A stretch of DNA of 64,000 bases from Haliotis cracherodii (taxonomy: Eukaryota): assembly GCF_022045235.1 (NCBI RefSeq), contig NW_027266266.1, positions 25,606,001 to 25,670,000 on the forward strand. The letters run 5' to 3'. Positions 39,743 to 52,999 of this stretch are shown piece after piece (the stretch's first letter is position 1; each line of letters starts with the position of its first letter). A program made the position numbers and the translations under genes. A model generated the notes under the pieces. It made no database searches. It saw only the letters and a list, made by a program, of their open reading frames with translations, and was not told where the DNA came from.

Positions 39743-41257
39743 TACTCTTCAAAAAAAGAAACTTGACACTGACTTTCAAAATGTAATATAATGCGACTGT
39801 TTCAAAATAGGACGCAAAAACCATAATTGAAACACTTTTTGAAGATCAATGTATACAATGTTCAAAACATTAATCGTGTCACCTAGACACACACACGTAC
39901 ACAATACAGTTAATGTCACAGGGGTACAGAAAATGGCAGTATCGGTTGTGCCCACCACGTGCATCAATCACCGCTTGACACCGACGACCCATAGATGAAA
40001 TTAATCGTCAATAACACGCTGTTGGATGTGCTGCCATTCACGCTGAAGTGCATCAAGAAGCGTCGGATGTGTTTGTGGCGGTGGATTCCTTCTGCGAACG
40101 CGTCGATCCAACTCGTCCCACAGACGCTCAATCGGGGACAAATCTGATGACCAGACTGGCCAAGGTAATGTCAAGATGTTGTTGTGCTGTAAGAAGTCCT
40201 CACAAACACGTGCAATATGCGGTCGAGCGTAGTCCTGCTGAAACTGTCCGCCATGAACGTTGACGTGAGGAAGAACGTAAGGCTGTAGGATCAAGTCTCT
40301 GTAACGCGCACCTGTCAATGCACCTGCCACATGCACGAGAGGCGTCCTACCACCGTGATGAATTCCGGCCCATACCATGACACTCCCGCCGCCAAATGGG
40401 ACAACCTGCTGCACACAGTTGGGGGCGTAACGTTCACCCCGACGTATGTAGACACGTGGGCGCCCATCAGCATGTGTGAGTAGGAAACGGGACTCGTCAG
40501 TAAACAGTACATTTCTCCACTTTGGACGTGCCCATCTAACCCTCTGTTGGCACCAAAGCAGACGGTCCGCCAGATGACGTGGGGTCAATGCATGACGTCG
40601 AACAGGTCCTCGTGCAAAAAGTCCAGCCTCCCTCAGTCTGTTGCGTACCGTTTGATTTGATATTCTGCGTACCCCAGGGATCTGTGTGGTTGTAGACGTG
40701 GCTGTGGCAGTGCAGACTCGGAGGTGTCGTAGCCGGATGTATCGATCTTGTGCTTGGGTTGTCACCCGTGGTCTTCCTGACCTTGGTCTGTCGTCAACTC
40801 TGTTGGTGTTGTTCTATCGGGTCCACAGTGCGGAGATTGTCTGTCTGGATACGCCAAAGTGCCAGGCCACTTCTTGCTGAGTTGCTCCAGCTTGTAATCT
40901 CCCAATGGCGTTTTTCCGTTGAGCTGCATTCAGTCTTGGCATGCTGTCACCGCCTCTACTGCCGTTAGAAGTACTGTATGAACAGCCGTTGATGAGGTGT
41001 GTTTTTTATACCCATTCAGCAGGGGGGCTTGCATGCCTAAATGCAGGATCCTGTGCTGTGCGTTTTTTACAGGCGGTTGCGTTTGGATGAAGCTGTAAAA
41101 TTGATCCCCAAACTCTACGTTTATGTGCTTTGCATGTGTTTTCGCGAATTATAGACACATCATATTTCTGTTTGACTTATTTGGTTCTCATTTAATGTAA
41201 TTATTTTAGATATTTGGCAAAAAGGGGTTTTACATCTATGTCAAGTTTCTTTTTTTT
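39743..41257 (-). mobile_element. Near full-length degenerate Tc1/mariner transposon
   Basis: TIR core AAAAAAAGAAACTTGACA near both ends (outer part missing at 41257). Transposase MPRLNAAQRKNAIGRL (ATG 40942), FTDESRF, GGGSVMVWAGI, QQDYARPH, WSSDLSPIERLW; frameshifted. Confidence 0.92.
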
Positions 41258-41540: not shown

Positions 41541-44500
41541 TCACATCTTCTTTATCCAGTCCAGCTCCCACTCCTTCATGGCCTTCTTCACCTTATTCCT
41601 GCCCCTGCTCCTTTCCAGACTCCTTTTCCTCCTGTGATGGGGGATGTCATGGATGCTGAGCCCAGCCACAGCAAACCGACTCCACTTGGGGCAGGCCGTC
41701 CCCGACCAGTACTCCAGCTTCCTCTGCAGGGCGGACATGACGTTGTCCTGGTCCACCGTGTCAGTCAGATGGAACTCCACCTCAGTCACGTCCCTGTTGT
41801 AGATCATCAGGATCTAGAGCAAGATGACAATGTACAACAACGTTCGTTTGGGGATTCTAATATTTGTTGTATGTACATGTTTTTCTGTTGTGAAAGATGA
41901 GGGATGACAATGGTTCAATTTTTGTAATATGCCTGTCAGTGTCAAATGACAAGGACGAGTTCGTTTTAAAGGATCAGGGAGCCTTGGATATGATATGGCA
42001 TTGATGGAATGTCAATATTATGTTGAAAGGAACCCCGATTATGAATAATACAATGGAAATCAAATGACAGCTATTTTAAAAATAAATCGGATTTTGTCAT
42101 TCCTAAACAATCAACATTCCAGCGGATTATTTCCCTCGAATAATTGATTCATTGAGAAGCATTTCTCATGCATACCTTTATAACATCCCTCATACTGGCC
42201 ATGTCTGCCTCAGACTCTATATACACCCTCACAACGCCAGACACCTGTCTTGCAAACTCTTGTTCAACCAGAGATACTAGCGGCGAGGGGTTGTCATCGC
42301 CGCTGTACAACAACTCCTCTCTGCTCTGTTGTGGGTCAGGCTGGTACTTGGAGTTCATCAGAGGCACTGCAAGCCCACATATAGTCCTAATGTACGATGT
42401 GGTATGGGTGCTACGGTGAGTTTCATAAAATAGATGTTACACAGAATAGGAAGCCAATCCTTTAACAATAGATCACTTTGGACAAAATGTAAATTATTTT
42501 CGTTACAGAGTTATCACGTTTGTAACGAACATTTTATCATCAACAGAACATGTTTAATCAATATCAATTCATAGTAGTGTGGAGCAAAGGTCTTGACAAG
42601 ATTTCAGTGTCAAGCTGACATTTTGACACACAATACCAGACATCTTTGAAATTATTAAATTCTTAGAAATAAGCAACTAATTTCAATCACTTACTTATTA
42701 GAGAATATAGCTGCGTGTTCTCCACACATACATTGCCGTCATGACACGCCAGAGAGTGAACACTTGATTCAGCGTTGTCGATGTTGAAGAAGGCAGCCTT
42801 GTCGACTACATCTTTGAACTGGTTTTTGGCAAGCGTCAGAAAAGTGTGAACCATGCCCACGCACCCACTCACTTTCTTATTCCATGTTGTTCCTACGAAT
42901 TAGACATGTAACGCAAACTGAATTATTGCTTTAAAGATTTCGGACACGGAAGGAGACCAGGTAGCATGATTGAAAGCAGTACTTGTATCAGTAGTAGAAG
43001 AGATTGGAACGAGCAACAACAAAACAATGCACTAGTTGTCAAGTTGTGTAAAAGAACCTTGGGCGTTACAGTAGCCGTGCTTTACTTTTACATGTGAGAT
43101 ACCTTTCCCAGGACATCCTCCACAGTTGTCCAGAACACACTTCTGGAGATCCGCCTCTATCGAACTCCTGGTCATTGTGGTCCCTGCAACTTTCATCAGG
43201 TCATCTCGAAGTGTGTTGGCCTGTTGTTGTCTGTGTTCCCTGGTCTCGCGACAGAAGGGGCTCTCCCGGTCGTGGAAACAGAACCTGATGTATGTATTAA
43301 CAGGACAAAGTAGCATAGACCAGTGTTTGTCATGACGATATGACATTTGGAAGTAGGTTCGCCAGAATTGTGCAAAGCTCAGACTTGAGTAGATCACTTC
43401 ACCACATATAAGCCATTAGTTTCACCACATGTAAACTTTAGTTTCACATTTAGTAAGTTGCAAGATATGAAAAAGAAACCTCATGAATTAAACAATACTA
43501 TTATTTAAAAAAATACAACTGATGGAACTTATGCCAAGTTCCAAACGTACCCAATTGAATATGTGTTGAAGGAGTAGTATGCGAACTGTTCACCAAGCCG
43601 CGGTGTTTTACATGTCCTCCTTTGGTTCAACGGATATATTGCTGGCCCCCCTACAGAAAGAAACAATGTTTATGATACATACATAAACGTGTATCCGCTC
43701 CGATTTTACAAGAGTGAATATTACCATTGTTATTTACATTGTGTCATTGACTCTAAAGCAGTTTCATTTAGGTGTTATTTTAATGTCCATTTCTCGAGTG
43801 TTTAGAATATCGATATAAAGGTTGTCATAACCTAGTAGGAATGTCATATACTCAAATGTTATGAAAACATTATGTACCTTTTCTGAGTTCGTTCATCGTT
43901 TGATGCATGATGTCAAAGAAAGCCTTATTTCCGGCATCCCACACATCAGCTATGTCACGAACATCACCGGAAGTCATCGGTCGAATGTCGAGGTATAATT
44001 TATCACTATGACAACCAATGCCAAGGCCACGTGACTGCAGTCGAAGCGTTGGAGAACAGCTTCTCAGAAACGCTTGTCCAATACTTACAAGGACCTCTGT
44101 TGATTGGTCTGCGATTGGCGTGACATACATAGCTTGCCCTGTTTCGAATCTGAACTTTTCTTGAGGATGTCTATGGTCAACGTCACGCATGTTGATGGAA
44201 TGGGACCTGGGTGGTACAATCATGTGTGGAAACAACGTATGACATTGACATGAAAAATATCTCTTCATCTAATATCCAGTAACATATCCCACATGTCACA
44301 GTTAGTGGTGATACAAATTCTTTCAAAATGTGCACAGCTTATCTTGTCAATCGATAAAGTGTAAGATTTTTCATCTACAAGAGCAAACTGCTGCTACGTA
44401 TCCAACAGAAGATTATATGGATATCCGTTATAAAAAAATTAAGCCTTCAATATCTATACATCTTTGTCCATATACACACCTGTAAGCAGAATTTTGAATG

Positions 44501-45690
44501 ACTCTGATTTCTTTTCCAAGATCATTTACCACCATCTCTAGACAGTCAACCAGGGATGTATCGAGTCTGAAGAACCTCCTCTCTGAGTGCTTGAAGTCAG
44601 ATATCTTAAAGTGTTGCGAGAGTGCTACGTCCTTATTGAAACCATCAAACAGTAAAGACTTTCTAGACTCGTCCTTCAATTCAGTGGGGTAGGCATAGTC
44701 TTCGTCCTTGACCCCTACAGCTAACAAAGTAGTAGCCTGGAACGGCACAACAGTTGCCCTGTAGCCGTCTTGCAGCTTGACATAGACGTCAATGGATGAA
44801 GACTTGGAAGTGTCTACGAAGTCAAACCCTGCACAGTTTGCCATAGAGCGGAGCTCGGATGTGGGAGGTGTTGTGCCTGATTGTGTAGAAATCTTGAGCT
44901 TCCTGTTGATTTGGTATATACACACAATGAATCATTGGTCTCTCATGGGGTAACATATTTATAAACCTCTATTGCTGTTTGATTGTTGTTTTTTGAAAAA
45001 AATAATATCATATTCATAGTTACATATGATTGATAAAAAATGGTTATAATAATACATAAAATTAATAAATTCGAATGTTAATATATATGCATGAGTTTGG
45101 GTATTCTGTCAAACATGTGTTGTTGTTTGTTGTTTAACGCCGCACTCTGCAATTTTCCAGCTATATCACGGCGGTCTGTAAATAAAGGAGTCTGGGCCAG
45201 ACAATCCAGTGGTGGGCAACAACGTTTTAGACAGCAATATAGAACGTATATGTATATGTGTAACTTTACCTCCCATTCATTTCAAGCATGATGCCATCAG
45301 ATGTTCCTTGATGAACTGCAAGGGATGGCTTTGACACACTTAATTTTGTACCTGTAGTGTGATAATAATACAGATATACTTGGATTAACGTCTTAGGAAC
45401 GATGGAATAGTCAACACAAAGTTGTTAAAGAGTTTGTCTGTCAGCCAAAGACATTGGTTCGATTCCCGAGAAGAAGATCCGGCGTTCGATTCCCGGCCGC
45501 ATGATACCAATAGACATTAAAATATGGTACTTGTTGTTACCATGTCTGGCGCTCGGCATTGAGGGGCTCAAACAAAGACTGTTCGGCTCGGAGTCAGTAT
45601 ACTGTGTCTGAGTGGGGTATTCATGTTACACTGCAGCATGGTATCTCAATGAGCCAGCACAATAAATCGGCATCAGTCCGGACTAATACA

Positions 45691-45749
<59 letters not shown>

Positions 45750-48700
45750 GCGTGCGCACGTGTGTCACGTCGCTATATAAGTGCAATAATCTTGGACGCG
45801 ACGTTAAACCCCATTTCACCTCACCTTGACTACCCTTACAATGATACTGCGATAAGCAACCGTTCACACTGATACTAATTCAATGAAACATAAATAAATG
45901 AGGTACACTTCCAAGAATCAATCTCAGTAAAGGAACATGACATCCCAAACAATCAGAGATTCACTGGAGTAACGATTATGCTTCAAATGCATATTATTTG
46001 ACCTGTGTTTTTGCAATTCGTTCGAACGGATTCAAAAGATAAATATTTTTATTTTCAAGAGAACATTTTTGCTGAGGATTTTAACTAAAAGTATATGTAT
46101 ATTGATATACATTGAAATGTGTAATGGATCGGGAAACAAAGAATAAAAGATTACCCTCATCTCATACTAGTATGAAACAATAATACCTGAATGATGATGG
46201 TGAACAATAGCGGCCATTCGTCGTAGGCGTATCGCCATTCTTGGGGTCATGACCCTCGTCTGACACCAATCCCAGGGTTCCGTACTGTCAGACCACTTGC
46301 ACGTGCTTTTGCATCTCCTGGTCGACTGATAGCATGTTGCCGATGATGATCCCTCGGGCTTGAATATGACGTCTTCATACGGATACTGAATTAGTCTGGG
46401 GGAAATGATATTCATCTTTTAAAGATGGCAAAATTTATATGGCTTCGATGCTATATCAACACGGATACTATCAACACATACCTATATTGTAAATCATGTT
46501 CTCTCAATGGGGGGTTGATGACGTGGGAAAGCACTTGATCCTGATGATGGTTCGCTCCTTGCTTGCAAACAGTAGAACCTGACTTAAGCCCTGAAAAGAG
46601 CAGTCCCCCGTGTGTGCTTTATATGTGTTATAGTGAAGAAATGACACTTTACCTGCAAATACGAAATCAATTGAATTTTGTGATACATTCTTCCTAAAGA
46701 ATAAAAAATTAAGACAGCTCTAGTTTCGATCTCATGTTTTTTAGACACCAGTGGCATTATGAATTCAATATGGTTGGTTGGTTGGTTTGCTGTTTTACGC
46801 CGCACTCAGTAATATTCCAGCTATATGACGGCGGTCTGTGAATAATCGAGTCTGGACCAGACAATCCTGTGATTGACATCACGAGCATCGATCCACGCAA
46901 TTGGGATTGATGACATGCATCAACCAAGTCAGCGATCCTGACCACCCGATTCCGTTAGTCGCCTCTTACGGCAAGCATAGTCGCCTCTTACGGCAAGCAT
47001 AGTCGCCTTTTACGGCAAGCATGGGATGCTGAAGACCATTTCTACCCCCGATCTTCACGGGTTTATTCAATAAGGATATGCACAGTTACACACATAACGA
47101 CAGCGTGCTGGACTACTCATGCCAAATTTAGCTGACACGCCATGATATACTGAAATACGGTTTAAAGTTTCTTAAAGACGTCATACACTCATTCATAGGT
47201 GTGCCAACTCATGAAATAACAGCAACATCCGTTGACTCGCTGTATTGACCTATCCTGATTTATCTGAATCTCGTTAAATACATGAAATGCTTCTTACGAT
47301 CCCACAAATTACCACAATTTCTCTCTATATATATACCTCCTTCAAGCCTTAATAATCTTTGACTTTCTTACCAGTTTCGTTTATTGTTCTTAGAAACGAC
47401 CCTTTCTCCAAACTGTCTCCAGAAGGTCCGATGGCCGATCGCTTTGATCTTTTTTGAGGCGTTGAACCATCATGAACACAGAATTCCACATGATCGGAAG
47501 TGGCATCAAAGAAAGGGAACCCAGCGCAAGCACCTAGTTCCGCCAATCTCTTCAACACTGGGGCTGACTTTTCCAACTGCAGAGGTTTAGATTTACTCGG
47601 GTTTTCAGTTGTCAGCGCCACCTGTAAAGCTCTTCCGGAATAGTGAAGTGAGGTAGCGCCATGACTTCCGTGAGGAAGATCCGATGTTGGTTCATCCCAT
47701 GCTTCAAGCACCACCAGTTTCCCTGTAGTATATGCAAATTGTAATTATTTTTATGATAAATACATATCGTATATGCACAATTGGTATGCTATCTTACCGT
47801 GTCCTCTTTTCTCACACATACATAATACTTATACTTTTTTATATTTGTATTTCCGATATTATTATCAATAAATTACATCCACTTTATGAAACTCTCATAG
47901 CGACCTATTTATTGTCAACCATTATCTGAATGACCTTAAATTTTAAAGGCAAATCACCATGTAGCCATGCCATATATGTCTTATTTTAAGTATTTTATTA
48001 TAAGACGCTAGTCCCCATTGTTCTTAACTTCTAGTGACCTCATCCTTTTGTTTTTACCGGGCCTTCATTTTGTTTAAAAGCCTCGAAGGCTTTCCAGCAG
48101 AACGAACCTGCAACCTCGCATATTATGTTTAATATTATAACCCACTGTTTTCAATCGGAGCCATCGGCCAGGTGATGAGAAGGGGTTATCTTATATGTGA
48201 CTGACTTCAGTTGTCTGCATGCTACAGGTGGCCTTTCCTCGCCTACTGTCTTCGAATTTGTTTTATACTACGACTACGGTATTGTTTTACCACTAGGCTT
48301 TTCGATGTTTTCTTAATCTTTCTGGTATTTCTTGCATTTCGACGATTTTTAAGTTAGTTAAAACACTCATCCCCAGTTCTGGTTGCACGAATTCCCGAAT
48401 TCGATTTTTTTCATTTTCAACCAAAACGTCTTCATCACATGATTGTATTGCACATTTACTGTCGGCCAACATCATACAGCAAACATGTATTCAACCCAAA
48501 GTCATCGACTAAATATTTTCATTTTCAATCTCACACCTACTCCTTGAATTTACAGCTTATCATCATCAACTTCGCAAACGTCACGAACTCAATGGTGCAG
48601 CGCGTCCTTACAACGAATTCTTACGGTTTGGCCATTCCTGTGCGGCAAACTGGCCGAGGGTAGTCAACGCTGCTGCTGCTGCTGAAGTCATCAATCTGTC

Positions 48701-51700
48701 TGCACAAGCATCAGTCTCGCTGTCGCCATTATCACTCCACACACATTTATGACAGGGCCGCTTTGACGTTCCACACCAGGTGGCACTGTCCTTTTCTTCT
48801 GATCGGAATAGGATGAAATCGCCTCCAATCAAGGTTAATCTGAAAGCGAAATGTCGTCATTAATTATCTCAAATCGCCACGTGAGGCCGATATGACCTCA
48901 GCGATACTGAGACAGTAGATCGAAGCCTATATGGCAATGTGAACACATACTTTGTAATCATATTAAACGTTAGATTATATTATTAATTGTTTTTCGTAAA
49001 ATAGTATTATTTCATTTTGATACCACACTTATCATCCAAGTTACAATATATGTTACGCTGAAGCTACTGCCAGTAGTCAAAAGCAAAATGTAAATAAAAA
49101 AAATAAAAAAATCCATAACCATGGGAATCTCCGTTGTCCGAATCAGACCATATAAGCATGTGCTTACTTCATGAAACAAAGCCTTCTCGTGACCTTACTT
49201 CTTAAAATTGCTATCTCCTCTAACGATCGCGTGGCCTGCTGCACCACAAATGTTTTCCATGGTCTTCCCATGAACATCAGCGACTGGAGGACCACAATTT
49301 GCGGAACAGACAGTGGAGAGAGTGTCGTTAACCAATGACTTGCGAATGACGGACGTGTCCACTAAGCCCAGATCCCTAAGAGGAATAAGAAATATGACTA
49401 TGTCAAATCATTAAGACAATAGTGTTTGATCATGCTTAATTGCATAGGATCATAGATTAATACTATGATTAATCATATAACTATCGGGTGTCCTTGGCAT
49501 GTTAATAACAATCTGTTGTGCAATGGGTATGATTATTAATGCATGTCAAGGGCAAGCAATAACAAAACGAAAGTGAAAAGTAATTAATTTACCATATGGT
49601 TTTATGGAAAGCTTTAGCCACAAAATCTGACTTGTCGAAGGTAAATATCCCGTCAACTGTGAGCGTGGCTGTTTCACAGCGACTGTATTCATCCTCGGTA
49701 GTTCGGGCGTACAGGACAGGCCTAAAACTTGCAACTTCCGGGGGCGTGAACACAAGGGAAACATCATGCTGAGACCACTGAACAGAAGCTTGTAAAGTGA
49801 CCTGGCAGACAAGAGGATAAATATTTTTAAAAAAATCAAATATATTCATGTAAAATAATGATTAGTATCGTTATTACTGTAAGGTGAGGAGACGTGAGAT
49901 GGTGTTTAGCGTCGCTTTCAAGATTATTTCACTTCTATGCCGACGTGCATGTATCCGTTTTTGTGTGACTGCTTGTGCTAGCCACACTGGACATGTACTA
50001 GTGCCGTATTGCTAACCCAAGGCGATACCATGCCGCAGATAACTTGGCTACCCCATTCAGACATATTTGACTGACAGTCATCTTAATGCCGAATGGCAGG
50101 CAGTGTAACAAGTACCATCTGTTAACGTCTTTTGATATACCGCGGCCAGGGATCGAACCCCCGACCTTAAGCTCTCCTATTATTGAAAGGACAAAGCCAA
50201 ATAGATGATACAAGAGTTGATATTGACACCTACGATCAGCGATTTCACGTAAGGTGAGGTAAAATTGGGTTTTACGTCGCTTCCAAGATTATCGCACTTA
50301 TATAGCGACGTGCATGCACGTGTGTGTGTGTGGCTGCTTGGACTAGTCCGGACTGATGCCGATTTATAGTGCTAGCCCACTGAGATACCATGCCGCAGTT
50401 TAACATGAATACCCAACTCAGACACATTATACTGACTCCGAGCCGACAAGTCCCTGTTTAGGACGATCTACCTCTTGACCACGGAGGCGGTCGGTTTCAC
50501 GTAAACATTAATTTCTGTCACGCTGACACCCATATTGACGATCAATATAATCATCACAACAGTATATGGTCTCACCTCTTGATAAAGGGACATCGAAAAG
50601 TTGTACTTGTTTGTGGAATGCCCGCTGAATGAATGGCCTGGTAATGACCAGCCAGTTGTAGTCAACTCCGTTTTCGGAATCTGCCCTGATGCTTCAGATG
50701 AGGCTGAATTCAAATATGATTATATATTCAAGTGTTTCTTATTCCAAAGATAGATACAGTACAGTAGTTGAAACTGGTAAATATATATAAAGCGGGCATA
50801 AAGATATCACTTTAGCATTACTCAATCACGGTAGACCAATACAAGTACATGGTAACTATTACTTAAAATCTTCATTACTATTTCTCTAAAAAAAATTCTG
50901 CACATGAGCTTCAGCAATTATGATACGATAATGACAATTAATACTCCATACTTGCAGTATAATTTCCTTGTACATGATATTTTCCACTGAAGTTGACTGG
51001 TCCATCAGATGTTGCGTTGACGTCTAAATATACAGTTTTGTGATATGAGATAACTAGTTGTATGGCTGGTAGTTTCTCATTCACCGTTGCAACTGGAATA
51101 GTCCGTAATATCGTTGTGGGAGTCTTGTCTAAGATAAGTTTTTCCTTGACGCCGACGGCTTTTCTGAAGTCCACGTCTAAGGCAACGTTGTAAATTGTAC
51201 CGACGTCGCCCTGAAACGTTTCTGAAGGTGTTACCGAAAGCACCGCTTTGTGGATTGTCTAATATCTTTTTAATATCGCAAGTGTTAGTTTTAGGTTTGT
51301 CCTTCGAGTTTGGTCAAGAATTACTGAAAAGCGATACATTCAAAAAGTTTTAGAACTATTTGAAAAATTGCATACAACCTGCATAAGGAATTTCTTGACA
51401 ATAGCTGTCTTGTTTCGTCTCTCAATGTCAAGTTCCCTGTAACAGAAGATGATTTGTTTTAAATGTTTTGTCAGTTTGAATGAAACATTTGGAGCAACGG
51501 TTGTGCCATTTTTTATTTTTTTTTATTTTCTGAATAGTTTGATTGTGTACATCTGAAATGAAAGATATGATATACATACTTCCCAATGTTCGATGTTTCA
51601 ATATTGTGTTCTGATATATATTGCATAATAATACTTACATTGTATGCCCAACGTGTCTCACTTCAAAACAATCCTTGCAGGTGAGGCGAAAGTCAACATC

Positions 51701-52999
51701 TCGAGGAATGGCACTAGTTTTACCTTTGCTGATCTTTTCGACCTTGACCTCCTTGTTACCCTGCTCCTTGTATACATTGTATGTATAGATCGAGTGATTT
51801 GTCTTGGCATCAAAGTTAAAGTTGATGGACTCGTCGCCATCGGTGGCATGGAAGTTGATTTTGTCCAAAACGTTAGAGAGAAGATTGGACACGAATCTTT
51901 TCTGACGATGACCATGTTTATTGGTTAAGTGGGGATATTTGAGAAACACCTGTGCTTCCTGAAGTAGATCTATGGCGCTGAAAATAGATAAACGGAAACA
52001 ATAAATGACAATCGACAGAAATCGCAACAATTACATACACTATATGACATTTGTGCAAGGTGTTGGTTACCTGACGTCGATGCCTTCAACCTTGACCTTT
52101 GTATGACTGACGATATTTACGCGTTTTATTTTCCTCACAATGGCGACGCGTTTGAACTCTAATCCATGCCTTTGTCGGACATTGGTGCTCATCAAATACC
52201 ATCCTGTTTGCCACCCGGAAGCAACCGAAGTGTCCCGAAGATTCACGATTATCTGCCCTTTGCTGTTTTCGGCAACCTAAAATGAACAGTAAGAAAATAA
52301 GGATCAGTGTTATAAGGCTCATTTAATGTTGCCCGCAGTCATTGAACAATGGGTATACTATCTTATGGCTTCACGACTGGGAAACAACTATTATTACACG
52401 CATTGATTTACGCAAAAATGAATGCATGAACATATAACCCTTGAAGATACGGGTTAGAATTAATCGTCAGCAACACATGCTTCTCAGGAGATGCGACTAA
52501 CGGGATGGGGTGGTTAATCTCGCTGAAGTGGTTCATGCATGCCATCGTATCCAATTTACATAGATCTGTGCTCATGATATCAATCACTGGATTGTCTGAT
52601 CAAACTCGAGTGTTTACACACCGCTGTCATAGAGCTGGAATATTGCTGAGCGAGGCGTTAAACAGCAAACACACAAAGAAATCATCAGCATATAAACAGT
52701 TAATATTTATGTTACGACGTTGAACAATGTGAAACATAAGAAGGTTTCAGGAGCAAAAAAATCATTAATGTGTTCATTATTTTTTGTACGCAATTTATAT
52801 TCACTGAGACTGTACATACACTGACGTCAGGCAGGACATCGAGATTGACAATGTGTGACAAGAGACCTCTGGAGTTCAGTTCCCATTCAGCATCGTCATC
52901 AACGTCTTTACCTCGACTTTGGTGTTTAAATCGACGCCAGCCATTGATAGTGCGAATACAAAATACGCAGAAAACAGCCCATAACACAACAATCTTCAT
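41541..52999 (-). CDS. Gene C: about 1420-aa secreted multidomain protein with two Hedgehog N-terminal-like (Hedge) domains and a degenerate peptidase M15A-like domain; no Hint domain (not a hedgehog ortholog)
   Basis: Exons (minus): 52999-52820, 52276-52071, 51977-51639, 51436-51379, 51258-50952, 50703-50576, 49801-49593, 49375-49199, 48839-48625, 47722-47372, 46590-46482, 46395-46187, 45351-45270, 44902-44480, 44206-43878, 43650-43551, 43284-43103, 42892-42695, 42366-42176, 41813-41541; sum 4266 nt, in frame. Signal peptide MKIVVLWAVFCVFCIRTING. Motifs FILFRSEE..ADRLMT..EWPNRKLVVLEAWDE..SLHYSGRA..LAELGACAGF..HVEFCV match Hedgehog-N. The acceptor at 51258 is weak and uncertain. Confidence 0.82.
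43978..44620 (-). other. Peptidase M15A-like (LAS/DD-peptidase fold) domain of gene C, catalytically degenerate
   Basis: LSQHFKISDF..RLDTSLVDCLE..LGKEIRV..SAYRSHSIN..FRFETGQAMYV..GLGIGC..LYLDIRP parallels bacterial M15A LSxHFxxxEF..IDxxLVxxLExLR..GxPIxIxSGYR..N..SxHxxGxAxD..GxGxY..FVHxDxR. Confidence 0.75.
44776..46570 (-). other. Hedge domain 2 of gene C (more degenerate)
   Basis: YPYEDVIFKPE..QTRVMTPRMAIRLRRMA..KLSV..MNGRKLKIST..ELRSMANCAGFDFVD..IDVYVK; same motif order as Hedge domain 1. Confidence 0.75.
45450..45826 (+). mobile_element. SINE family 4 with expanded (CA)n(CG)n microsatellite
   Basis: Homology to 34028-34362; (CA)n then (CG)n at about 45693-45760. Confidence 0.8.
46772..47063 (-). 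mobile_element. SINE-like repeat, family 2, with internal 22-bp triplication
   Basis: Homology to 613-853; AGTCGCCT(C/T)TTACGGCAAGCAT repeated three times at about 46957-47022. Confidence 0.85.
47475..49260 (-). other. Hedge domain 1 of gene C (Hedgehog N-terminal signalling-domain fold), split over 3 exons
   Basis: ENICGAAGHAIVRGDSNFKKL / DFILFRSEE / ADRLMT / QEWPNRKLVVLEAWDE / SLHYSGRALQV / LKRLAELGACAGF / HVEFCV align by eye with Hh EKTLGASG..RFKEL / DIIFKDEE / ADRLMT / QWPGVKLRVTEGWDE / SLHYEGRAVDI / LARLAVEAGF / HIHCSV. Confidence 0.9.
49880..50460 (-). mobile_element. Two adjacent SINE family 4 copies in gene C intron
   Basis: Copies at about 49880-50175 (with B box GGGATCGAACCC) and about 50250-50460 (5'-truncated). 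Confidence 0.75.
52437..52672 (+). mobile_element. SINE-like repeat, family 2 (diverged)
   Basis: Homology to 613-853. Confidence 0.75.

Follow-up and report, generated by a model that had tools for sequence, protein, structure and literature searches.

The origin of the Hedgehog signalling domain is debated between bacterial transfer and descent via hedgling-like proteins, and no branch of this question has been studied less than the Hedglets. Hedgling, found in sponges, cnidarians and choanoflagellates, resembles the abalone protein described here in being large and extracellular, with a Hedge domain, no Hog domain and an incomplete zinc motif; it differs in its taxa and in its architecture, which runs from an N-terminal Hedge domain through vWA, cadherin and EGF repeats to a membrane anchor. 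The name Hedglet was given by Jägers & Roelink (2021, PMC8052667) to what we call the short form below. That paper describes proteins of lophotrochozoans, amphioxus and echinoderms that contain Hedge-like domains, treats only a core of ~105 residues, calls the distribution of the family enigmatic, predicts that Hedglets are unable to catalyse, and states that Hh is present in all animals that have a Hedglet. Its available text makes no mention of M15-like or CD38-like flanking domains or of furin sites.

Gene structure and conservation

In the 64,000-nt window analyzed (Haliotis cracherodii, contig NW_027266266.1, positions 25,606,001 to 25,670,000), we find what is very probably an intact gene for a long-form Hedglet of 1405 aa, secreted and soluble. 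The whole coding region (41541..52999, minus strand) was delimited by collinear tblastn of P0057 (RefSeq, Haliotis rufescens LOC124134979, 1405 aa; ~91% identity), P0002 (RefSeq, H. asinina; ~80% identity) and P0058, with the first two running from 52999 to 41544. Exons 1 to 20 lie, in order, at 52999-52820, 52276-52071, 51977-51639, 51436-51379, 51210-50952, 50703-50576, 49801-49593, 49375-49199, 48839-48625, 47722-47372, 46590-46482, 46395-46187, 45351-45270, 44902-44480, 44206-43878, 43650-43551, 43284-43103, 42892-42695, 42366-42176 and 41813-41544. Their lengths total 4215 nt (1405 codons), all of the introns (19/19) were placed with GT-AG at each junction, and the 20 exons contain no in-phase stop. 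Since the stop codon falls at 41543-41541, the coordinates and the count of 20 exons given in a preliminary description of this DNA are exact, in agreement with the orthologue alignments and the 19 GT-AG introns.

Comparison of exon 14 with two paralogues (dN/dS 0.19-0.20) shows a signature of purifying selection on this exon. The H. cracherodii genome contains at least five long-form loci with two Hedge domains, and abalone paralogues of the long-form gene stand in tandem. As the locus shows, duplication in molluscs affected first the Hedge module and later the whole gene.

Relatives have contigs of 4426, 3428, 3819 and 2952 nt that are taken up by ORFs (1407, 956, 952 and 925 aa, respectively). 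As this leaves no space for introns, we take the contigs as transcripts and each full-length ORF as one chain. That the model joins exons of separate genes, or describes a decaying pseudogene, is highly improbable: the 20 GT-AG exons are clean and without stops, the RefSeq orthologue in H. rufescens is of equal length, relatives have full-length ORFs without introns, dN/dS is ~0.2, and exon 14 encodes both the end of Hedge 2 and the start of the M15-like domain, so that these two domains share an exon.

Relation to the published Hedglets

The abalone protein has the features by which PMC8052667 recognizes Hedglets: a detectable Hh-N-like domain, loss of zinc and catalytic residues, and homology beyond the core. 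In common with the published members, it also lacks a Hog domain and occurs in an animal that has Hh. It differs from them in length (~1400 aa versus ~920-960 aa), in its N-terminal 500 aa, and in having two tandem Hedge domains instead of one at ~residues 270-420. One Hedglet accession from that paper, XP_002607850.1, falls in the cluster of match P0034, and the published segment of B. floridae XP_002599309.1 resembles the Hedge region of match P0036. By blastp, short-form proteins align to residues 744-1402 of P0057 (E 1e-51 to 1e-60). The family had been described from this DNA as uncharacterized; it has indeed been left so, but PMC8052667 already names its short form.

The short form (~920-960 aa, one Hedge domain) is found in echinoderms, hemichordates, amphioxus, a nemertean, annelids and molluscs. 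The long form is found in gastropods, bivalves, cephalopods and a brachiopod, and outside molluscs only as a Lingula fragment. Because it encodes 1405 aa and two Hedge domains, against the published single-Hedge architecture, the abalone gene is, as judged from its sequence, a distinct long-form subfamily of Hedglets, mollusc-specific apart from the Lingula fragment.

We also considered the two better known Hedge-bearing families. Identity with hedgling was rejected, as HH_signal is the only Pfam match in seven full-length homologues and there is no transmembrane segment; identity with Hedgehog was rejected, as there is no Hog/Hint domain with G|CF, no CGPG and no H141/D148/H183 triad.

Secretion, topology and furin-type sites

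Apart from the signal peptide (~residues 1-20, MKIVVLWAVFCVFCIRTING; 52940..52999, minus strand), the protein has no hydrophobic segment. A Kyte-Doolittle scan of the 1405-aa product in 19-residue stretches yields a single segment with mean hydropathy >1.5 (residues 1-22), as expected from the signal peptide claimed earlier, and no second hydrophobic or transmembrane segment. M1 is nearly invariant across the Hedglet family.

Reading of the 1405-aa sequence reveals neither CGPG nor GCF, and Pfam finds no Hint domain (PF01079) in the full-length orthologues. The Hint matches of the genome lie on contigs C7, C8, C10, C11 and C23, with none on C3, the contig of the window. Without GCF there is no cholesterol adduct, and without an N-terminal CGPG there is no palmitate. 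With neither a Hint domain nor the lipidation motifs, the protein is therefore not processed or lipidated the Hedgehog way, and on these points motif reading and Pfam agree with the preliminary description.

The N-terminal region of ~500 aa (exons 1-8; 49199..52939, minus strand) occurs only in the mollusc long form. Neither Pfam nor profile comparison with the remaining domains of the protein gives a match, and its Atlas scores are ≤0.75.

Three furin-type sites were read directly on the minus strand. RQKR|F at ~residue 156 (51896..51907) is matched by R-x-[KR]-R at the same alignment position in 11 long-form members. RSKR|S (47439..47450) lies between Hedge 1 and Hedge 2, where 8/17 long-form members carry such a motif, and RRKR|S at ~residue 1379 (41622..41633) has a counterpart in 12/17. 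At this last site both family forms show little or no variation in the R and S of '[KR]RS', and the 26 aa that come after it (41621-41544, minus strand) are a conserved C-terminal peptide with NWE.DW at its end.

Hedge 1 and Hedge 2

Hedge 1 (~residues 520-690) is encoded by exons 9-10 with one intron (47466..48790, minus strand), and was delimited by Pfam HH_signal on exon 10 and by alignment with Shh, fly Hh and the abalone's own Hh. In the family alignment a four-Cys insert precedes its Hedge core. Hedge 2 (~residues 745-885) is encoded by exons 12-14 with two introns (44776..46395, minus strand). Exon 10 alone passes HH_signal (E 3.6e-5, 24.0 bits; cut-off 22.1 bits), and the full-length orthologues match in two stretches (E 1.5e-21), the second of which marks Hedge 2. 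In a search of the PDB, a family profile hits Shh, Ihh, Dhh and fly Hh twice. By hhalign the two domains match each other with a probability of 99.7% (E 3.7e-27); Hedge 1 and Hedge 2 are a tandem duplication.

The structures used here and below were predicted for homologues (36-38% identity to the abalone protein) rather than for the abalone's own spliced product; in that of the oyster homologue P0019, Hedge 2 superposes on Hh-N with Z 18-19 and rmsd 2.1 Å over ~150 residues at 30% identity. The predicted Hedge fold and secretion are common to the abalone protein and Hedgehog proteins, whereas the abalone protein has no Hint/SRR, and its Hedge domains are internal and have lost the zinc triad and E177. 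The presence of two Hedge domains in one chain, as first described, is borne out by Pfam, the PDB profile matches, hhalign and the predicted structure.

Of the zinc triad (Shh numbering), Hedge 1 keeps H141; position D148 is not Asp (Q in an ungapped alignment), and at position H183 either F or E stands in place of His, according to whether the alignment is shifted by one residue. E177 is replaced by T, H135 is retained, and of the six Ca ligands four remain (E90, D96, E127, D130). In Hedge 2 the triad is replaced by E/K/D, E177 by S, and the Ca ligands are lost. The true Hh of the genome (contig C10) retains the H, D, H triad and CGPG.

A third LAS-fold domain

The second half of exon 14 and exon 15 (43878..44727, minus strand) encode a putative M15-like pseudo-peptidase. 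We compared it with the M15/LAS enzymes (1lbu, phage L-Ala-D-Glu endolysins, VanX/VanY) and rusticalin. In the AF2 model (pLDDT 85) its nearest fold is 1lbu, the Streptomyces albus Zn DD-peptidase (VIA-align, Z 10.1, rmsd 2.3-2.4 Å over 116-118 residues), a match that recurs in an unbiased structure search, followed by endolysin LysECD7 (Z 9.3), ChiX (Z 8.9) and Hh-N (Z 7.1-7.6); Foldseek gives E 1e-3. The Hedgehog/DD-peptidase fold sought by AlphaFold and Foldseek is therefore present in the predicted structures of homologues. Pfam Peptidase_M15_3 (PF08291) stayed below threshold, reaching E 0.052 and 14.1 bits at best (cut-off 23.2) in 3/25 members, with no match in fragments. We count a match of the PHROG 894 endolysin to the third domain of one member (E 2.3e-4) as a sub-threshold hint.

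The domain shares with M15A-type enzymes the predicted fold and the SxYR..N motif, present here as SAYR..N. It differs from them in being embedded in a multi-domain animal protein, in scoring below every Pfam M15 threshold, and in its zinc site: the enzymes have H-x(6)-D ... H ligands, and all three are replaced, by F, Y and Y in this protein and by F/Y/H, mostly E, and an invariant Y across the family. In 26 long-form sequences SxYR..N and an invariant Arg, Ser and Tyr are kept while the metal ligands are lost. The M15A-like domain proposed earlier thus stands as to fold, nearest relative and motif, without an HMM above threshold. A complete His-Asp-His zinc triad is shown by the aligned residues to be absent from all three putative LAS domains.

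A predicted CD38-like C-terminal domain

Exons 16-20 (41634..43650, minus strand) encode a C-terminal domain of ~290 aa, the best-conserved part in both family forms. In the P0019 model (pLDDT 86), Foldseek matches it to CD38 (E 3.8e-5, ~270 columns), and VIA aligns it to the cyclase fold over 200-214 residues (Z 11.2-11.7). An unbiased search of 48,161 chains ranks three cyclase family representatives straight after Hh (CD38, 11.2; Aplysia cyclase, 11.0; CD157, 10.4; next unrelated, 7.6). In the family alignment, 10 cysteines show little or no variation, which is also how many are conserved in the ADP-ribosyl cyclase family. By its predicted fold alone, the C-terminal region is a CD38/ADP-ribosyl-cyclase-fold domain; the preliminary description had noted its cysteines and missed this identity.

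With CD38, CD157 and ADP-ribosyl cyclase (PF02267) the domain has in common the predicted two-lobed fold over ~200 residues (Z 10.4-11.7), a cysteine-rich composition and an extracellular location; it differs in having no detectable sequence similarity and in being fused behind LAS domains. PF02267 finds no match at E up to 10 among 25 members, and HMMER and hhalign against the true cyclase exons of the genome are non-significant. Placements by eye of the catalytic Glu (E226 in CD38) and the TLEDTL Glu (E146) are ambiguous; the candidate column for the catalytic Glu, uncertain in its position, holds E, Q, N, H, S, T, I or K across members.

Possible functions

As to how the protein works, our leading, tentative proposal is a binding or scaffold role outside the cell for a convertase-processed product made from pseudo-enzyme modules. 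The protein carries, in order, a signal peptide, the N-terminal region of ~500 aa, Hedge 1, Hedge 2, the M15-type LAS domain and the predicted CD38/ADP-ribosyl-cyclase-fold domain. Predicted cleavage at the conserved R-x-K/R-R sites in the secretory pathway would free the N-terminal piece and the 26-aa C-terminal peptide, and perhaps split Hedge 1 from the remainder. Outside the cell, the former peptidase clefts would hold a ligand with no cleavage of it, in a non-catalytic binding or scaffold role, and the product would not be a lipid-anchored morphogen of the Hedgehog type. Identity and mode of action taken together, we place this as the best explanation overall at slightly better than even.

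A soluble modulator or decoy of Hedgehog signalling, whose Hedge domains would rival true Hh in binding to co-receptors or partners in the matrix (candidates are Ihog/Boc/Cdo-type FN3 domains, glypicans and heparan sulfate), is unlikely. Hedge 1 retains H135, H141 and most of the Ca ligands (four of six), the Hedge 2 model of a homologue superposes on Hh-N (rmsd 2.1 Å, 30% identity), and according to PMC8052667 Hh accompanies every Hedglet. However, the zinc site contacted by Hhip is lost in both Hedge domains, the Ca site is lost in Hedge 2, lipid adducts are absent, and the four-Cys insert replaces the N-terminal Hh segment. Zinc-site loss in all three LAS domains favors neither a decoy nor innate-immune recognition of peptidoglycan or muropeptides, whose D-Ala or stem-peptide end would be bound in the inactive M15-like cleft, as it is by non-catalytic PGRPs. 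We hold such recognition to be improbable: strict 1:1-like conservation across phyla and dN/dS ~0.2 are atypical for fast-evolving immune receptors, and the remaining domains are left without explanation. It would fit the retention of SxYR..N and the invariant Arg, Ser and Tyr beside lost metal ligands, the peptidoglycan peptidases as nearest folds of the third domain, and the tandem paralogues in abalone. It would also fit rusticalin, an animal protein with an M15-type domain that is expressed in ascidian hyalinocytes, a hemocyte class (PMC6339383).

The C-terminal domain raises the prospect of a NAD-consuming enzyme (ADP-ribosyl cyclase or NADase) that is active outside the cell, with the Hedge/LAS modules serving to deliver or tether it. 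The predicted cyclase fold spans nearly the whole CD38 ectodomain, and the 10 cysteines and the strong conservation in both forms point the same way, but the lack of a sequence match to PF02267 or to the true cyclase exons, and the variable, uncertainly placed Glu column, make this doubtful. Similarly hard to credit, in our estimate, is a joint reading, in which Hedge/M15 modules are coupled to a CD38-type domain that binds or converts NAD or nucleotides, and LAS-Hedge-LAS is a relic of Hedge origin. Were a nucleotide role correct, this would be an extracellular protein for nucleotide signalling or sensing, with a conservation that extends from amphioxus and echinoderms to molluscs. Were the joint reading correct, the LAS-Hedge-LAS layout would keep the stage at which Hedge arose from an M15-type peptidase domain in an animal protein, and Hedge would not have originated through a bacterial gene fusing directly with Hog.

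The locus shows Hedglets to be large secreted proteins in which Hedge stands beside a separate M15-type LAS domain and a predicted CD38-fold domain. It yields concrete constructs and a domain set for a Hedge versus M15 phylogeny. Amphioxus members of the family are annotated as 'SHH' and 'IHH', and these annotations are corrected by their assignment to Hedglets.

An intact long-form Hedglet gene on the minus strand

A complete multi-exon gene occupies positions 41541-52999 of the window on the minus strand. Comparison of Haliotis proteins with the window by tblastn gave 18 collinear matches running from 52999 to 41544, with about 91% identity for H. rufescens LOC124134979 (P0057, 1405 aa), about 80% for the H. 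asinina protein (P0002) and about 76% for the H. rufescens paralogue LOC124134974 (P0058). All introns could be placed, with every donor GT and every acceptor AG, yielding 20 exons that include a 58-nt micro-exon at 51436-51379. The exons carry no in-phase stops and sum to 4215 nt (1405 codons), and the stop codon lies at 41543-41541. Intron placement thus reproduces exactly the coordinates and exon count of the preliminary description, whose anatomy of the protein was also right. Exon 14 compared with two near paralogues gave a dN/dS of 0.19-0.20, a measure of purifying selection. It seems settled that the locus is an intact gene under selection encoding a long-form Hedglet, with a signal peptide, an N-terminal region of about 500 aa, Hedge 1, Hedge 2, an M15-like third LAS domain and a CD38-like C-terminal domain. 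The gene was searched exon by exon, and database orthologues (P0057, P0002, the oyster homologue P0019 and the homologue fragment P0006) served as full-length stand-ins. The N-terminal region showed no similarity by hhalign to any other domain of the protein.

Two further features were seen at the locus. Intron 12 contains, at 45676-45780, some 80 nt of (GT/CA)n microsatellite flanked by repeat-like sequence. Just downstream of the stop codon, a 254-aa ORF on the minus strand (40001-40765) resembles by eye what we take to be a Tc1/mariner-type transposase.

Tandem Hedge domains without an intact catalytic site

When single exons were scanned against Pfam, exon 10 alone passed the HH_signal cut-off (24.0 bits against 22.1, E 3.6e-5), the other exons lacking a match because the pieces are too short. 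In the orthologues HH_signal is found twice (E 1.5e-21 for P0002), upholding the two Hedge domains proposed earlier. A family profile searched against the PDB matched Shh, Ihh, Dhh and fly Hh chains at two places (E 1.7e-16); at the sequence level this search recovered nothing beyond Hedgehog (neither M15 nor CD38), and matches to 'Cake' designed proteins were discarded as low-complexity noise. Hedge 1 and Hedge 2 form a tandem duplication, scoring 99.7% against each other by hhalign (E 3.7e-27).

An AlphaFold2 model was made of P0019, a 901-aa protein corresponding to P0057 residues 508-1405 (pLDDT 86.0, pTM 0.71). Hedge 2 of this model superposes on Hh-N with Z 18-19 and rmsd 2.1 Å over about 150 residues at 30% identity. 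At the start of both Hedge domains the Hh N-terminal segment is replaced by a four-cysteine insert. The position of Shh H141 is kept as His in Hedge 1 and is Glu in Hedge 2; that of D148 is not Asp in Hedge 1 (Gln in an ungapped alignment) and is Lys in Hedge 2; that of H183 is not His in Hedge 1 (Phe or Glu, depending on a one-residue shift) and is Asp in Hedge 2; and that of E177 is Thr and Ser, respectively. Hedge 1 keeps four of the six Shh Ca ligands (E90, D96, E127, D130), and Hedge 2 has lost them.

A third LAS domain of M15 type

A single exon, exon 14 (44902-44480), codes for both the last part of Hedge 2 and the first half of the third LAS domain, so no splicing is needed to join the two. 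We modelled this domain on P0006, a 280-aa fragment with 38% identity to P0057 residues 841-1092 (pLDDT 85.2). By VIA-align the model lies closest to 1lbu, the Streptomyces albus Zn DD-peptidase of family M15A (Z 10.1, rmsd 2.4 Å, 118 aligned residues), followed by the LysECD7 endolysin (Z 9.3, 2.7 Å, 109) and ChiX (Z 8.9, 2.8 Å, 109), and then by Hh-N domains (Z 7.1-7.6, 4.1-4.7 Å, 113-124). Foldseek also ranked 1lbu, LysECD7 and ChiX at the top, at E 1e-3 only, and an unbiased search with the 901-aa P0019 model again returned 1lbu for this region (Z 10.1). Among profile libraries, Pfam Peptidase_M15_3 matched 3 of 25 members below threshold (best E 0.052), PHROG 894 (endolysin) matched one member (E 2.3e-4), and NCBIfam gave no match. 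The M15A-like domain proposed in the preliminary description thus finds support in the predicted fold, while the Peptidase_M15_3 HMM stays short of significance.

Hhalign assigned the third domain a probability of at most 4% against the Hedge domains, so it is no recent duplicate of them. It retains SAYR..N, a motif of M15A-type enzymes. The zinc-ligand positions read Phe, Tyr and Tyr in the window; across the family they are Phe, Tyr or His at the first, mostly Glu at the second and an invariant Tyr at the third. Judged from these residues, the domain is a predicted pseudo-peptidase across the whole family.

A CD38-like C-terminal domain

The predicted CD38 fold of the C-terminal domain is the main addition to the earlier account. 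With the P0019 model, Foldseek placed CD38 chains right behind the Hedgehog matches, aligning about 270 columns at E 3.8e-5 with probability 1.00 and a target TM of 0.5-0.57. VIA-align to CD38 gave Z 11.2-11.7 over 200-214 aligned residues, covering CD38 residues ~45-291. Independently of Foldseek, the unbiased search of 48,161 representative chains returned for this region porcine CD38 at Z 11.2, the ADP-ribosyl cyclase of Aplysia at Z 11.0 and CD157 at Z 10.4; the next match had Z 7.6, and several lower ones are NADase-type folds. Ten cysteines of the domain are invariant or nearly so.

Sequence methods gave no support for this assignment. PF02267 matched none of the members at E up to 10, and the C-terminal profile was non-significant by both HMMER and hhalign against the true cyclase exons of the same genome (contig C67), after which a motif match made by eye (FFN..VENTQLYSL against FWSG..LEDTLIGY) was dropped as evidence. 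An ESM Atlas search with the N-terminal 500 aa and C-terminal 310 aa returned scores of 0.78 or lower throughout, and its sole suggestive row, Rib_hydrolase (rank 13, score 0.75), was taken as a lead only.

Canonical ADP-ribosyl cyclase genes with FWSG, TLEDTL and WCG motifs lie at C67:7223315-7236319 and 25718942-25729472 (L008-L013). As these genes are found elsewhere in the genome, the CD38-like domain of Hedglet would represent an additional, divergent lineage.

Secretion, processing and possible modes of action

The sole hydrophobic stretch of the protein is residues 1-22; a search of the protein for a second hydrophobic segment, CGPG and GCF found none, and Pfam scans of seven full-length relatives were likewise free of Hint. 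The absence of Hint, CGPG and GCF described earlier is borne out by these scans. Thirteen Hint matches occur in the genome, on contigs C7, C8, C10, C11 and C23, and none on C3, which carries the window. The true hedgehog gene, at C10:21254870-21294025 (L001, L002), has two Hedge exons and, some 14 kb beyond them, a Hint exon, and it retains CGPG, an intact H/D/H triad, SLHYEGRAVD and HIHCSVK. About ten Hint matches fall outside hedgehog on C8, C23, C7 and C11, several clustered on C23 and C8, and these could be Hog-only (Lophohog-type) genes.

Three furin-type sites were located on the minus strand: RQKR/F (residue 156; 51907-51896), present in 11 long-form members; RSKR/S (residue 699; 47450-47439), in 8 of 17; and RRKR/S (residue 1379; 41633-41622), in 12 of 17. 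Long and short forms alike show invariant or nearly invariant Arg and Ser in the '[KR]RS' of the last site when the family is aligned, and short-form proteins have a stretch of Arg residues between their M15-like and CD38-like domains. These motifs suggest that the protein is cleaved at its R-x-[KR]-R sites; at a fourth R-x-R-R motif, within a Hedge 2 helix, cleavage is unlikely.

Since the protein has no lipid adducts, membrane anchor or LAS zinc site, we infer that it acts neither as a Hedgehog-type morphogen nor as a peptidase. Most economically, long-form Hedglet would be an extracellular, convertase-processed protein whose LAS modules may bind ligands in their former active-site clefts. 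Narrower roles are each possible: a putative competitor of Hedgehog for co-receptors or matrix, given the Hedge domains; a putative peptidoglycan sensor, given the M15-type fold; or a putative active NAD-consuming enzyme, given the CD38-like domain.

Long and short forms of the family

A phmmer search with the largest exon (44431-44931) against 1.84 billion representative proteins found 49 relatives, including ~1400-aa proteins of Haliotis, Batillaria, Sinanodonta, Pecten, Saccostrea, Ostrea, Octopus and Argonauta. The architecture of the window's protein, which the preliminary description proposed seeking in other proteomes, is present in molluscs (gastropods, bivalves and cephalopods) and in a Lingula fragment; echinoderms (sea stars and a brittle star), hemichordates (acorn worms), amphioxus, a nemertean, annelids and also molluscs have a short form of ~920-960 aa, ordered by blastp as M15-like, one Hedge, M15-like and CD38-like domains. 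ORFs of 1407, 956, 952 and 925 aa were found in Logan contigs of 4426, 3428, 3819 and 2952 nt, respectively; because they nearly fill the contigs, we take these, on lengths alone, to be transcripts. Amphioxus has several short-form paralogues, two of them auto-named SHH and IHH (Branchiostoma lanceolatum P0104 and P0114); at ~945 aa and without Hint, both are misnamed.

The short form had already been named, contrary to the earlier claim that the family was wholly unrecognised. Bürglin 2008 and later surveys cover Hedgehog, the Hog-only families (including Lophohog) and hedgling, and the Hedglet family is absent from them. Jägers & Roelink 2021 (PMC8052667) introduced the name 'Hedglets' for domains resembling Hh-N in lophotrochozoans, amphioxus and echinoderms; they predict that these lack catalytic ability and describe their distribution as enigmatic. 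They list proteins of Branchiostoma (XP_002599309.1, XP_019614930.1, XP_002607850.1), Acanthaster (XP_022111291.1), Lottia (XP_009064322.1), Crassostrea virginica (XP_022317995.1) and Mizuhopecten (XP_021349176.1), each with Hedge at about residues 270-420; the analysis there used only ~105 residues, and the text considered here leaves neighbouring domains unmentioned. XP_002607850.1 falls within the cluster of short-form match P0034, and the segment given for XP_002599309.1 resembles the Hedge region of short-form match P0036. From this correspondence and the Hedge position, the published Hedglets are the short form. Our literature search found the word 'Hedglet' in no other paper and, by gene identifiers and domain or family names, no dedicated study of the family. 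Lophohog was rejected as a relative, being a Hog-domain family. New here are the long form with its tandem Hedge domains, the structural evidence for the M15-type domain, the predicted CD38-fold domain, the conserved putative cleavage sites and a broader taxonomic range.

The H. cracherodii genome holds at least five long-form loci: the window's gene, two more on C3 and two distant ones on C45. The latter (L006, C45:66551969-66552361; L007, C45:66272929-66273327) show 34-37% identity and have a single ~250-aa exon for the last part of Hedge 2 plus the complete M15-like domain, so the exon 14/15 intron of the window's gene is missing there. Those on C3 are of the LOC124134974 type and lie about 290 kb (L004, C3:25359168-25359593) and 130 kb (L005, C3:25520252-25520677) from the window's gene. 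Their proteins are 95-99% identical to H. rufescens LOC124134974, and a comparison of the two loci shows 904 differences in 3426 bases, which makes them distinct copies.
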